35,791 bases of DNA, taken from positions 147,233,222 to 147,269,012 of the forward strand of contig NC_068983.1 in the NCBI RefSeq assembly GCF_001194135.2. Reading direction: 5' to 3'. Position numbers and translations under genes: made by a program. Shown one piece after another: positions 105-33,527 of the stretch (position 1 is its first letter; each line of letters starts with the position of its first letter). Origin of the DNA: Octopus bimaculoides. Lineage: Eukaryota. The notes under the pieces were generated by a model. The model saw only the letters and a program-made list of their open reading frames with translations. It did no database searches and was not told where the DNA came from.

Positions 105-211
105 GTAAAGTGGATACATGGAAAAAATGGTTGACCGTAGAGCAAAGTGAACGAATGGATGCAAGGCTCCAATCAGAACTTACAGAAAGAAGAATCAAAT
201 TTAATTTCTGA
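105..211 (+). CDS. SULT-fold gene copy A, last coding exon (exon 5)
   Basis: Acceptor ctttgcag|gt at 104/105. Translates G-KVDTWKKWLTVEQSERMDARLQSELTERRIKFNF* with TGA at 209-211. Same length and phase as copy B exon 5, with the SULT C-terminal KxxxTVxxxE motif. Confidence 0.9.
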
Positions 212-374
212 ATTATTCCATTTATGTTAAAAATTTGCAACTCTGGAGCTTAGTTTTAAAATTTAATATAAAATTTTGTCATCTAGTAACATACATAGGA
301 AAAGAACATTGTCAGTTCATACGAATCAATGGCTCAAAAAATAATTGTCTTGCAATAATGAGTGAATAATTTTG

Positions 375-380
375 AATAAA
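375..380 (+). promoter_or_regulatory. Putative polyadenylation signal of copy A
   Basis: AATAAA about 164 nt after the stop. Copy B has AATAAA about 159 nt after its stop in a visibly homologous 3'UTR. Confidence 0.55.
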
Positions 381-496
381 CATGTTAGTATTTAATTTAT
401 CTGGACTTTTGCTGCTTAAGTCTAAAATCTAATCTCTTATTATTGTTCAAAATGATAATCAACTTTTACTGCACAAAGCAGTTGAATTGAATAATA

Positions 497-1567
497 ATCA
501 ACTTTCGACACCTCCTTCTTTTTGCTTTTAGTCAAGGTTCTAAGGCCGCAAAAGCTGCTTGCGACATCTGTGTTGTGTATGGAGAGTTCAAAAAGTTCAA
601 AAATAGAAATTTTGACCTCAAAGACGCACCTCGTTCTGGCCGTCCAGTTGAGTTCGATGAAGTGCAATTAAATCAACATTTACACAAAAATTCTCCTCAA
701 ACAACAAGGGAACTGGCAGAGAAAATGGAATGCTCCCACACTGCTATAGAGAAGCATCTTCACTCGATGGAAAAGGTACAGAAGTATGGAGCATGGGTTC
801 CGCATGCTTTAAGTGACAACAACAACAAAAAATCAACGAGCCACAATCTCCGCTGGTTTGCTTGCTCGTCACCGTTCAGCTTATGGACACAAGCAACGAT
901 TTCTTTACCGAATCGTTTCTGGCGACGAAAAATGGTGCCTGTATATCAATATGAAGCAGCGTAAGGGATGGCTTAGCCCCGGTAAACAAGCGACACCGCG
1001 CGTGAAACAAGATCTTCATCCGCGTAAAATAATGTTGTGCGTATGATGGGACTGGGAAGGGATTACCCATTACGAATTGCTTGAAAGGAACCAAAAGGTC
1101 AACGCGGAAATCTATGTTCAACAGATGGAACGACTCAACACGGCTATTCAAGAGAAAAGACCTAATCGACAGCATGGAGTTCTTCTGCTGCACGACAACG
1201 CCCGCCCTCATATCGCCAATATGACCAAGGAAGCCATTCAAACGCATGGCTGGGATGTGCTGCCACACCCACCGTACTCTCCTGATTTGGCACCAGCGGA
1301 TTTCACCCTCTTTCGATCTCTTTCAAATGCTATGCGTGGAGTTTCGTTCAATACTGATACAGAATTGAGAGCTTGGTTGGATCAATTTTTCGAATCGAAA
1401 TCGGGTGATTTCTACCAACGAGGTATTGAAAATCTTGTTGAACGTTGGGAAGAAGTTGAAAACAATAAGGGTGAATACATTATTGAGTAATTAGTCATTT
1501 TTTTATTAAACCTTTTAAAAAATTAAAATTTAAAAAAACCCGCGGGAACTTAGTTGCCAACCCAATA
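497..1567 (+). mobile_element. Decayed mariner (DD34D, mauritiana-like), 5' TIR missing
   Basis: Transposase pieces in several frames: FRHLLLFAFSQG, DAPRSGRP, WVPHAL, GDEKW, HDNARPH, PPYSPDLAPADF. There are frameshifts and a TGA at W(W)DW. The 3' TIR ...acttagttgccaacccaa is followed by TA at 1566-1567. Confidence 0.92.
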
Positions 1568-1822
1568 TATTAGTTACAATACTTATATGACAAGTCTCAC
1601 CACACGAGTTTCACTCTGGAAAATAACATTTACAAATTATAAACGAACAAAATTTTGTAGATCATGTTTTCACAATATCTTTAAGATTAACTTCCTGTTC
1701 GATTTTCTCAATTGTATTGTTATTTTATTTAAATGGGCAATGTGAACAAATATATGTATTAACTCTTCTGGGTGGAGACATTGTGAATAACCTTAGTATA
1801 TAACATGAATATGACAAGATAT

Positions 1823-1912
1823 AATGATGACGATGATGATGATGATGATGATGATGATGATGATGATGATGATGATGATGATGATGATGATAATAATAAT
1901 AATAATAGTAAT
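1823..1912. repeat. (GAT)n-(AAT)n compound microsatellite
   Basis: Direct reading. Confidence 0.97.
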
Positions 1913-1914
1913 AC

Positions 1915-2050
1915 TGTTGCCATAGGGATGATAGCAAAAGGGGTTGATTGCTTCCTAGCTCAGATACCAGGAAACCTCAATATGGCAGTAATTCAAAAGA
2001 TAGTGCTCAAGGGAACCGCCCATATCCTACGTAAAATTTTGTCTATGTAA
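1915..2050 (+). mobile_element. 3' end of R4/Dong-like REL non-LTR retrotransposon
   Basis: AIGMIAKG...QIPGNLNMAVIQKIVLKGTAHILRKILSM* matches the C-termini of the other REL-LINE fragments here (LLGTAHILRKTLSIQ, STTHIFRKTLSIL). It starts immediately after (AAT)n. Confidence 0.75.
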
Positions 2051-31100: not shown

Positions 31101-31285
31101 TTCTATAAACGGTGAAATCATGAACGGACAGCGATTAATTTTTGACTGTTAAAAGATTAGATTTAATTACTGTAAATAAATATCTCTGATCACTAAATAT
31201 ATGCGTTCCTTAGATCGTCTGAGAGATTCATATTTATCTATTTATACATTTGTTTTAATAGCTAAGATTGTATATCACATTTCAG

Positions 31286-31603
31286 GGTCACATTGGATGT
31301 TTGAAATTGTTAATATGATATTGACAGGAAACAGTGAAAGGGTTTCCTTGCTAAAAGAAGACATGTTATTAGATAGTGCACCTGCTGAACTACTTGATTC
31401 CACTAAATCACCTCGATTCTTGAACACGCATCTTCATCCTGAACTTCTGCCTCCAGAATTGCTAAAGGATCATAAAATTATCTTCCTCAACCGCAACCCA
31501 AAAGCTGTGCTGGTGTCGTCGTACAGACATACATTAAACGTTAATTTGTTGGACTACAAAGGAGATTTTCCAAGCTATTTTGATCTTTGGATAAAAGGAG
31601 AAG
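31286..31603 (+). CDS. SULT-fold gene copy D, coding exon 2
   Basis: ttcag|gg; 318 nt as in copy B; SHWMFEIVNMI...FLNTHLH...RNPKAVLVSSYRH...LWIKGE; donor g|gtaag. Confidence 0.93.
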
Positions 31604-31944
31604 GTAAGCCTATCAAGTTATTGTTACTACTAATAATTTGTTACTACTACTAATTTGAAAGTTTATTTCATACTCTTCTGTAGGTGAAATATGGAAATGA
31701 AATTAGTTATCCCTCCATGTTATTTCTGCCTGTACCCCACAAAGCCATGCATCTACAAATGTATCGTTGTATCTGAACATAGATCTTGTCACAATCAAAG
31801 TCGTGTATCGATAATGACATTCAACCGAGATGTATAAGTGCAACCTTAGACGTTTATCTTACATATTCCTTGTCGTTCTTCTTAGAACATGTATGTTCTT
31901 CTCAGATATTGATTTGAAGATTTTGAATTGCATCTAACATTTAA

Positions 31945-32000
31945 ACGGCGCTGCCCCAGCATGGCCACAGCTTAGAGCTGAAACTGATAAACAAAAAAAC
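31945..32000 (+). mobile_element. SINE 3' terminus
   Basis: ggcgctgccccagcatggccacagc...ctgaaac matches the ends of the other SINE copies. Confidence 0.5.
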
Positions 32001-32966
32001 ATTCGTAGATGTAGTAGTGAATCATCTGCAGACGAAACGCAAAATGAGCATCCAACGTTGATATTTATGTATTTCATTTCAATTTAAACCAGAGATTCGC
32101 GTTCAAAAGCAACAATCTTTTTCTTTTCAGTTTAACACCACACCCAAGAATTATCAGAGTCATCCTGTTGCAAGCATTCGGTTCCTGTCTCTTTACTGCT
32201 AGTCTAGGAAGCATTGTCAATGACCATGTACCCTATATTTCTCTCCTGATAAAATCATCGACACAATCCCAACGTCGTGACTCATCTGTGCTGCTTTTCA
32301 TCCTCTTACATTTCCATCATTTTGCTTTAAGATGTTACTGTTGGTTCAATTCCATGCTTCGCACCTGGTCTATCCGTCCTTTGTATTCATGGAGTAACTT
32401 ATTTGTCTTCTCCTCAGACCACTTCCCCACTCATTTTTATGGATTTTAACGTTTGTCTCATATTCTCTCAACACTTTTTATTTCATATTCTCTTATTGAT
32501 ATTTTCTACCTGGTCACAAAATACATATCAAGTCAAGTCTATTTTTTCATTTAATTTTTTTTAGATTATATCAATGGAAGTATACTCTGATCTCATGTTA
32601 ACTAAGAACATATTATATTCAATATTCTGAGATTTTCAATGCATTATATCGGAAAATTCATATTTTTATTAAACTTTTTTATCTATTATCAATCACCTCT
32701 GTTGTATGCACAGAAATACTATCAATATGACGTTGCAAATATCTATGTTAGATGCACTGATGAAAATATAAATTTCACAAATTCTCTCTATAATTGTCTG
32801 TAAAATATAAAATTTTGTACTCACTTCCCAAAAAGTTGCCTAAAATATTTTCGTTTTAAGCATTGCATTGTCATTATAATTTAATTTAACGTTATGAGCA
32901 GAGGGTTTGGCTATTCTTTTGAAAGTTATTACATAAACATATCAATTTATTCTTTTAATTTTTCAG

Positions 32967-33064
32967 TTCCTTATGGTGATTACTTTGAATACGTTCAGGA
33001 AATTTATGCTCTATGTAAAGATAACCCAAATGCACTTATCATAACTTACGAAGAAATGAAAGCA
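32967..33064 (+). CDS. SULT-fold gene copy D, coding exon 3
   Basis: tttcag|tt; 98 nt; (V)PYGDYFEYVQEIY...IITYEEMKA|gtaat; 26/33 aa identical to copy B exon 3. Confidence 0.92.
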
Positions 33065-33349
33065 GTAATTATATATTAATTATGTTTAATTTTATAATAA
33101 TTTATTTCGTGTTTTTGTTTCCCGTGTACACAAAAGATATCCAAAGTATAAAGTTTAACTTTTAAATAATTCCAATTGAAAAAGTATAATTACCACATAG
33201 AATATATCCCTTCACATGCCTTCCACATTTTTTTAATGCATTTCTTTTAACGTATTAATCAGAGAAATTGTTTTACGCATGTAAGAAAACATTTTAACGT
33301 TAAATACTGAAAATTTCACAATTTGACTTCAATTATTTCTCTTCAACAG

Positions 33350-33527
33350 GATATGTCCAAAGCAGTGTCACGTGTTGCTAAGTTCTTGGGGAAAACTATT
33401 TCAGACCAACTTACAGAGAGTATTGTTGATATGTGTTCATTTGATAAAATGAAATCTGAGAAAAATGTGACTAATTCGTTTTTAATCAAAGATCATTTCG
33501 TAGAAGGCGGTACTATCTACCATTCTG
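33350..33527 (+). CDS. SULT-fold gene copy D, coding exon 4 (exon 5 not in window)
   Basis: ttcaacag|gat; 178 nt, one codon shorter than B; DMSKAVSRVAKFLGK...CSFDKMKSEK...GGTIYHS-G|gtaat. Confidence 0.92.

Follow-up and report, generated by a model that had tools for sequence, protein, structure and literature searches.

SULT4A1 is the best-known orphan of the sulfotransferase (SULT) fold. Vertebrate and insect members of the fold carry Thr52 and the "catalytic" Lys106 (numbering of human SULT1A1 unless a copy is named), and activity drops by two to three orders of magnitude when estrogen and flavonol sulfotransferases are mutated at the P-loop lysine. This lysine, K48, stabilizes the bridging oxygen of the leaving phosphate (PMC11625862; PMC3733922). 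A Lys or Arg in this 5'-phosphosulfate-binding loop is treated, together with a serine of the following helix motif, as defining sulfotransferases, and the helix consensus RxxxDxxxS has been described for the Pfam family Sulfotransfer_1, PF00685 (PMC11625862). Here we analyze a tandem array of SULT-fold genes in 35,791 nucleotides of Octopus bimaculoides DNA (the window, meaning the whole stretch analyzed). The array runs head to tail on the plus strand and consists of the final exon of copy A, the whole of copy B, a fragment of copy C, and exons 1 to 4 of copy D. We identify these as intact, constrained SULT-fold genes that lack K48, and their sequences suggest that either the mechanism has changed or sulfate transfer has been lost.

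Retinol dehydratase of Spodoptera keeps the canonical contacts to 3'-phosphoadenosine 5'-phosphosulfate (PAPS). It is an example of the SULT fold taking on other chemistry that depends on PAPS (PMC11625862). In Anopheles, AgSULT-001425 is active with Arg-Asn at positions 257-258, where a backbone amide contacts the 3'-phosphate (PMC9356239). K258 is consequently dispensable, and its loss, which the original prediction for this DNA had counted among the missing PAPS contacts, is a weak criterion of PAPS binding. The same activity excludes AGAP001425 as a precedent for a pseudo-SULT, in which role it was considered and rejected (PMC9356239).

In the literature searched, we found no report of the missing lysine, of this kind of pseudo-sulfotransferase, or of an octopod SULT expansion, and no description of the activity of any octopod member. 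A "sulfotransferase 1C2" occurs in octopus optic-gland transcriptomes (bioRxiv 10.1101/340984) and a "sulfotransferase 1C4" in bobtail squid (Euprymna); both are mentioned by name alone, and neither could be linked to this family. Annotation by homology as sulfotransferases (currently 1C4, 1E1, and 1A2) was already known, and the residue loss appears to be new.

A SULT fold with a noncanonical cofactor site

In the profile comparison that had been proposed as a check, copies B and D matched PF00685 at 175 bits (E=2.4e-51) and 174 bits (E=3.9e-51), respectively, both far above the curated cutoff of 22, and with such E-values the family match is not due to chance. The best sequence match among human structures is SULT1C2 (E=5e-38). 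An AlphaFold2 model built on a 25-sequence alignment reached a mean predicted local distance difference test (pLDDT) score of 89.2 and a predicted template modeling (pTM) score of 0.88, and Foldseek aligned it with human SULT2B1, 1B1, 1E1, and 1A1 at template modeling (TM) scores of 0.76-0.85 and a probability of 1.00. Model confidence is lower only at the N terminus and at residues ~251-280, which by position in the model appear to correspond to the active-site cap, a segment that is conformationally plastic in the Anopheles SULT (PMC9356239). Profile, fold, dimer motif, and the catalytic base His108 (His127 in copy B, present in 24/24 octopod sequences) therefore all match what is described for PF00685 and the SULTs. 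The Lys or Arg at position 48 does not, as the codon there is GGA (Gly77) at 3822-3824 in copy B and GCA (Ala69) at 22853-22855 in copy D.

Residues were compared in an alignment of 127 sequences numbered on human SULT1A1. The numbering of the reference sequence agreed with the published K48, W53, K106, H108, R130, S138, Y193, R257, K258, and G259; HMMER alignments to solved human SULT1 structures ran without gaps through the motifs. The strings THPGAGSHW and SFPAAGSHW, RNPKA...S, and HSGKVDTWK are exactly those given by the original prediction. Within the P-loop of copy B, K48 is lost, G50 (G79) and W53 (W82) are kept, T51 is conservatively replaced (S80), and T52 is His (H81), which is common to most other lophotrochozoan relatives, as is the Asn found in place of K106 (N125). 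Also kept are H108 (H127), R130 (R148), S138 (S156), Y193 (Y212), F229 (F248), G259 (G278), and W264-K265 (W283-K284); lost are D134 (A152), R257 (H276, codon 9485-9487), K258 (S277, codon 9488-9490), and G262-D263 (D281-T282). The changes in the window's clade can be written as K48 to G or A, R257 to H, K258 to S, G262-D263 to D-T, and D134 to A. The R257-K258-G259/GxxGxxK loop is hence not matched (it reads H-S-G-K-V-D-T-W-K), with only G259, W264, and K265 kept. The replacement of D134, the middle residue of RxxxDxxxS, in the window copies was absent from the original prediction. The KxxxTVxxxE dimerization motif is present as KKWLTVEQSE in copies A and B and in relatives.

Distribution and order of the losses

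Relatives were sought twice with a word index and once by exhaustive HMMER comparison with 1.8 billion representatives, and the results below refer to the best 150 of 5315 matches, with names looked up for 30 clusters. The named non-octopod proteins come from chitons, bivalves, gastropods, brachiopods, and one squid; a sea urchin sequence is also in the set, and many members are unnamed. A Lys or Arg at position 48 is found in 0/24 octopod sequences, compared with 102/102 other close single-domain relatives (K in 95, R in 7), and no K48-bearing octopod SULT occurs among the 30 named clusters. Most of the 102, which are mainly lophotrochozoan, have His at position 52 (GTHW, 79/102) and Asn at position 106 (55/102), and it follows that K106 was already absent before the octopod loss of K48.

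The octopod sequences form one clade, with 88% support, in a neighbor-joining, distance-based tree (200 bootstraps) whose deep relationships are weak and whose decapodiform and Nautilus sampling is almost nil. Branching first within it is the P0107 group, which comprises O. bimaculoides XP_014768939 (on another chromosome) and members from O. sinensis, O. vulgaris, and Argonauta, and carries P[SA]SGTHW together with a canonical YRKGQVGDWK and NPKD; K48 is its sole noncanonical position, and it is ~90% conserved from Argonauta to Octopus. The P0105 lineage, represented by Argonauta only (PYSGTHW, YRTGKVATWK), comes next (92%), followed by clade 2 and clade 1 together (96%). Clade 2 has five sequences (PT[AS]GTHW, [YF]RSGK[VA]S[TA]WK), and clade 1, to which the window belongs, has 14, from O. 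bimaculoides, O. sinensis, O. vulgaris, Argonauta hians, and one transcriptome (P[GA][AT]GSHW, YHSGKVDTWK). Among cephalopods the word-indexed searches returned only octopods, with no squid or Nautilus orthologue. The only squid protein from the exhaustive search, Watasenia scintillans BBB86724.1, is canonical and falls outside the octopod clade in the tree.

Across the 24 octopod sequences, H108, R130, G50, H52, W53, G259, W264, and K265 are invariant, and the remainder of the P-loop (P47, G50, S/T51, H52, W53) and S138 are invariant or nearly so. In the RxxxDxxxS helix, R130 (R148 in copy B) is invariant, S138 (S156) is S or T, and D134 is A or S in clades 1 and 2 and retained in the P0105 lineage and the P0107 group. 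Position 48 is itself unconstrained among octopods, being G, A, T, S, or Y. A scan for gained basic residues found no compensating residue common to all 24 octopods at a recognized PAPS contact; in the two large octopod clades it gave R97, K250, K279, and others, none of them both at such a contact and in all four lineages.

The most economical history suggested by these sequences is a stepwise one, in which K48 would have been lost once, in the ancestor of the whole octopod clade, with K258, G262, and D263 changing next, D134 then changing before clade 1 and clade 2 separated, and R257 being replaced by His last, in clade 1, the only subclade in which it is lost. All these losses would predate the split of Argonauta and Octopus and the tandem duplications in the window. 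The original prediction held that the loss predated the duplications and that the genes were nevertheless kept and amplified. For K48 this is borne out by the lack of Lys or Arg in 24/24 octopod sequences, the single octopod clade, dN/dS (below), and synteny, and it needs qualification for R257, which is gone in clade 1 only.

Some proteins, molluscan ones among them, contain two to four tandem SULT domains, namely P0034 (O. bimaculoides XP_014774057.1, 697 aa), which includes a clade-2-like octopus domain, and P0102, P0103, P0116, and P0152 (600-1079 aa). The aligned domain of P0116 has neither K48 nor His108. These proteins may be fused gene models or real multidomain proteins.

Constraint on the remodeled pocket

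Coding sequences of five further genes were obtained by exact protein-to-genome threading, and ratios of nonsynonymous to synonymous substitution (dN/dS) were calculated according to Nei and Gojobori (NG86), with Fisher P values. Every pair of paralogues gave a dN/dS of 0.24-0.48 (P from 1e-3 to 1e-19), so that the values near 1 expected of young pseudogenes were not seen for paralogues, and the orthologues of copy D gave 0.54 (P=0.03). With dN/dS of 0.24-0.68 overall, the family is under purifying selection that is relaxed compared with that on typical housekeeping genes.

Within the proteins, constraint is unevenly placed. For the positions that line the cofactor site and the acceptor site of human SULT1A1, the mean entropy in clade 1 is 0.45 at the cofactor site versus 0.89 at all sites (permutation fraction, 0.0008) and 1.45 at the acceptor site (top 0.1% of permutations); the 102 canonical relatives show the same contrast (cofactor, 1.03; acceptor, 2.95; all sites, 2.43). 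The remodeled loop YHSGKVDTWKKWLTVEQSE ([FYVIL][YF]HSGK[VI]DTWKKW[LF]TVEQSE) has proportions of nonsynonymous (pN) and synonymous (pS) differences of 0.036 and 0.36, a ratio of 0.10 that indicates that the new loop sequence is actively preserved and not drifting. Elsewhere, pN/pS rises from 0.16 in the NTH region to 0.26 in the R130-S138 helix and 0.38 in the P-loop. The conserved cofactor site, the retention of His108, R130, S138, and the P-loop, and the ratio of the new loop fit a cofactor pocket that is still in use. With respect to expression, a 1213-nt contig of run SRR3401912 contains a complete, intronless 300-aa clade 1 open reading frame (ORF) and is most simply a spliced mRNA, as genomic family members carry kilobase-sized introns.

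Interpretation and competing explanations

The sequences are best explained if these are functional protein-coding genes for an octopod-specific form of the cytosolic SULT1 family that selection has maintained and whose cofactor pocket has been remodeled. The residue tied most closely to catalysis and several charges that contact phosphate are gone, and the catalytic histidine, the adenine-stacking residues, R130, S138, and the form of both loops have been preserved under strong selection. We tentatively favor, as quite possibly correct, a less basic nucleotide pocket that is still in use while lysine-assisted sulfuryl transfer has been lost or altered, and not a dead scaffold. This would cover a neofunctionalized or strongly attenuated enzyme as well as a nucleotide-gated ligand binder. 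The proteins would fold as SULTs and dimerize through the KTVE motif, would retain binding of a PAP/PAPS-type adenine nucleotide (PAP, 3'-phosphoadenosine 5'-phosphate) in the less basic pocket, and would accommodate varied small hydrophobic or phenolic ligands beside His108. Since the loss of the P-loop lysine, purifying selection has acted strongly on His108 and on what remains of the cofactor pocket, and the acceptor pocket has diverged from copy to copy. Without assistance by that lysine, classical sulfonation might be strongly slowed, or might have given way to a different reaction that depends on a nucleotide or to ligand binding gated by one. Of the functions listed in the original prediction, a structural protein or dead site is not favored, given the conserved cofactor site and the loop pN/pS of 0.10; an altered enzyme or a ligand binder stay in consideration. 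Several points weigh against the reading of a used but lysine-free pocket. The orthologues of copy B have a dN/dS of 0.68, which is not significantly below 1 (P=0.2), and copy B may thus have undergone recent relaxation, its latest branch alone being indistinguishable from neutrality. The lost charges might be offset by His52, His276, or Lys279, so that activity is normal. Conservation of the P-loop and helix could be partly structural and not related to a ligand, and canonical K48-bearing octopod SULTs may exist beyond the best 150 of 5315 matches.

If such compensation were complete, the proteins would be ordinary, competent PAPS-dependent sulfotransferases in which, e.g., His52, His276, or Lys279 has taken over the roles of K48 and R257/K258, an explanation that we consider rather doubtful but that deserves weight. 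It would agree with a strongly constrained cofactor site that retains His108, R130, S138, and both the nucleotide-stacking and the adenine residues, with the persistence of the P0107 group, canonical save at K48, from Argonauta to Octopus, and with the tolerance of Asn258 by an active insect SULT (PMC9356239). It also gains from the lack of a K48-bearing octopod SULT among the named relatives, for if octopods have none, something must perform cytosolic sulfonation. However, the lineage-dependent G, A, T, S, or Y at position 48 points to no specific replacement there, the scan for gained basic residues gave no candidate shared by all 24 at a recognized PAPS contact, and the Lys or Arg present in 102/102 other relatives is regarded as defining the enzyme class (PMC11625862).

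The opposite view, that these are noncatalytic pseudoenzymes that bind neither PAPS nor PAP and, as has been suggested for SULT4A1, serve to bind or buffer small molecules or to regulate, appears unlikely. Free of a nucleotide, His108, R130, S138, G50, S/T51, and H52 could drift, yet they are invariant or nearly so in 24 sequences that diverge to 37% identity, and the disabling changes of SULT4A1 (Trp53 to Leu and a shortened, out-of-register loop) are absent, W53 being invariant and the loop length unchanged. Its merits are that up to four charged or consensus cofactor contacts (K48, R257, K258, and D134) are gone in the window's clade, that a variable acceptor pocket would suit diversified ligand binding, and that SULT4A1 offers a precedent of a conserved protein that binds catecholamines without binding PAP (PMC1847840). 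That the genes are young pseudogenes or annotation artifacts, only seemingly intact, is very improbable and already largely refuted by intact ORFs and conserved splice sites in at least six genes of two species, members in Argonauta, paralogue dN/dS with P values down to 1e-19, motif-level pN/pS of 0.10-0.38, and the spliced transcript-like contig for one family member. What can be said for it is that copy C is clearly dead, that the dN/dS of the copy B orthologues is the one noted above, and that the region is rich in transposon debris and assembly gaps.

Gene models and surroundings of the array

The window is placed at ~147,233,222-147,269,012 of O. bimaculoides chromosome CM046603.1, because locus L003, retrieved for the copy D protein, is identical to it base for base from window position 12649 on. 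It is AT-rich (GC, ~0.28-0.41 where bases are read) and packed with microsatellites and transposon debris. A six-frame search of the window, with an octopus SULT fragment and then the full copy B protein as queries, placed all SULT-like coding pieces on the plus strand and found no minus-strand SULT exons. Every intron is GT-AG, and phases are identical in copies B and D.

The last coding exon of copy A (105-211, +) has a phase 1 acceptor, encodes ..KVDTWKKWLTVEQSERMDARLQSELTERRIKFNF with its stop at 209-211, and is identical to the C terminus of XP_014790794.1 (P0006); an AATAAA poly(A) signal follows at 375-380 (+), 164 nt past the stop. Copy B begins with exon 1 (3594-3828, +; ATG at 3594), which ends within the P-loop between PGAG and SHW. 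Exon 2 (5308-5625, +) opens with SHW and carries NTHL with the catalytic His127 and the 3'-phosphate helix RNPKAMVVS. Exon 3 (8882-8979, +) and exon 4 (9311-9491, +; ending ..FYHS G) lead to exon 5 (10469-10575, +), which encodes GKVDTWKKWLTVEQSE..., keeps the KxxxTVxxxE dimer motif, and stops at 10573-10575; the AATAAA signal lies at 10734-10739 (+), 159 nt past the stop. As predicted, the poly(A) signals of copies A and B are matched, lying in 3' untranslated regions that align with each other. The spliced coding sequence of copy B comprises 939 nt (312 aa plus stop) and translates to exactly the NCBI protein "sulfotransferase 1C4 [Octopus bimaculoides]" (P0004; 100% identity). The original description of an uninterrupted 312-aa ORF is correct for this spliced message; a single genomic ORF was rejected, as the ORF list of the raw DNA contains none of that length. 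A 265-aa ORF at 5256-6053 was likewise rejected as a gene, being exon 2 read past its donor into a microsatellite and a reverse transcriptase fragment.

Copy C is a pseudogene fragment (15922-16108, +) of the 5' part of exon 2, with one frameshift near 15960, and is truncated where reverse transcriptase-like sequence starts; no further exons of it were found in the six-frame search of the window. Copy D has exon 1 at 22649-22859 (ATG at 22649), exon 2 at 31286-31603, exon 3 at 32967-33064, and exon 4 at 33350-33527 (ending ..IYHS G), all on the plus strand. The claim that these four exons are intact, with GT-AG sites and identical phases, was upheld by reading the junctions and by the match to P0009, the copy D protein, whose exon 5 lies ~2.9 kb past the end of the window (window equivalent, 38720-38826). 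The array goes on outside the window with copy E (P0008), ~13 kb downstream of D. The order A-B-D is syntenic in gap-free O. sinensis, and the five-exon structure is kept in at least six genes of the two species; in O. sinensis the same five exons are found, with exons 2, 3, and 5 of equal length and exon 4 of 178 or 181 nt. The O. sinensis orthologue of copy D carries in its fourth intron an antisense, exon 5-like fragment (TVEQSERTASRIQSEFKDQGIIFN; L004 15804-15875, -), ~600 bp upstream of the real exon 5. A second family locus, L007 (CM046603.1 157,131,487-157,136,313, reverse strand), lies ~10 Mb from the window, and its sole annotation is a 175-aa protein of two exons (P0002), which is a truncated gene model or another partial copy. 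For a further protein, P0021, no contig position was found.

Three runs of N interrupt the window, at 4446-4758 (copy B intron 1) and 17972-18473 (intergenic), both adjoining simple repeats, and at 25722-26717 (copy D intron 1), the largest, with repeats and pieces of transposons around it. The simple repeats that border the first two are (TA)n or (CA)n (4385-4445, 17930-17971, and 18474-18540). The window end (35791) is a further 2-kb assembly gap within copy D intron 4 (L003 23144-25163). The orthologous O. sinensis loci contain zero N, and the flanks of each gapped intron are colinear on both sides with the orthologous O. sinensis intron. Frame and exon content are therefore unaffected, since the gaps avoid coding sequence, their flanks are colinear, and the O. 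sinensis exons are the same. The middle of D intron 1 (~24045-29994), which contains the largest gap, has no colinear O. sinensis counterpart and only repeat matches there.

Between and inside the SULT genes lie broken transposase fragments of the mariner/Tc1 type at 575-1490 (+), 7191-7565 (-), 11519-11857 (+), and 20744-21349 (+). In Pfam they match DDE_3, Transposase_1, and the Mos1 domain HTH_48; the ORF at 11519-11857 shares the ..PYSPDL.PSDY.LF motif and has no Pfam match. Past the exon 2 donor of copy B (5626-6053, +), no stop codon interrupts the frame across an (ACC)n/(AAT)n/(GAT)n microsatellite and on into an RVT_1 fragment (5832-6050). The reverse transcriptase-like stretch that cuts off copy C (16108-16200, +; ..MEWVDYRNAYDIIPYS..) has a motif similar to one after B exon 2 (5900-6000, +; ..AWIDYRKAFDSIPHT..), and a single retroelement family may have inserted beside exon 2 of each copy, or one insertion may have been copied along with the gene. 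Copy D contains minus-strand retroelement ORF fragments in intron 1 (23870-24638) and intron 4 (34167-34562), with one weak zf-RVT match, the others having no Pfam match.

Implications and comparison with known systems

A clade of >20 genes in at least four octopod species lacks a residue deemed part of the definition of a sulfotransferase and retains the catalytic histidine and a strongly constrained, remodeled pocket. It offers a natural experiment on the need for the P-loop lysine and adds a candidate pseudoenzyme or neofunctionalized family to the SULT fold, which is of relevance to sulfotransferase enzymology, pseudoenzyme biology, and cephalopod genomics. The NCBI names "sulfotransferase 1C4," "1E1," and "1A2" probably overstate present knowledge, and octopus studies that treat these genes as steroid- or xenobiotic-sulfating enzymes rely on an unproven assignment. 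It could be speculated, although we judge it somewhat unlikely, that a single K48-less ancestor gave rise to every SULT1-like gene detectable in the incirrate octopods (Octopus, Argonauta). If so, a whole animal order either sulfonates by a lysine-independent mechanism or has dropped classical SULT1 sulfonation, in which case the amplified fold might now serve a novel reaction that depends on a nucleotide or the handling of ligands, e.g., optic-gland steroids.

By analogy only, cephalopod S-crystallins are lens proteins derived from glutathione S-transferase that became multicopy after catalytic weakening. They differ from the SULT-like genes in fold and tissue role, and the latter give no sign of a structural role or high expression. 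Vertebrate SULT4A1 (PDB match 1zd1, E=2e-29), an orphan without detected activity, also combines a conserved SULT fold with a noncanonical cofactor site and no assigned reaction. It keeps the P-loop lysine region and instead has Trp53 replaced by Leu and a shortened loop with no Lys between Arg and Gly (PMC1847840), whereas the octopod proteins keep Trp53 (Trp82) and the loop length and have lost charges. SULT4A1 is, moreover, single copy and extremely conserved, whereas the octopus genes are tandemly amplified and evolve fairly fast (pairwise omega, 0.24-0.68). Spodoptera retinol dehydratase (PDB match 1fmj, E=2.6e-22) resembles them in pairing the SULT fold with a nonstandard reaction, a PAPS-using dehydration, but is merely a distant relative. 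Anopheles AgSULT-001425 differs in having a basic Arg67 at the K48 position, in keeping Arg257, and in its K106/H108 pair.

With canonical SULT1 enzymes (human SULT1C2, 1A1, 1B1, and 1E1), the octopod proteins share fold, length, His108, R130, S138, W53, G259..W264-K265, the dimer motif, and the pattern of a conserved cofactor site beside a variable acceptor site; they differ in that octopod members have no Lys or Arg at position 48 and in that the window's clade also shows R257 to H, K258 to S, G262-D263 to D-T, and D134 to A. A scallop EST is reported to inactivate estradiol with PAPS (PMC13603450). The nearest non-octopods listed, at 30-39% identity, are the SULT1-like proteins of scallop, oyster, abalone, chiton, and Lingula together with Watasenia BBB86724.1. 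These lophotrochozoan relatives have GTHW (His52) and Asn106 in common with the octopod proteins, but all of them keep P-K/R-x-G and R-K-G..G-D-W-K.

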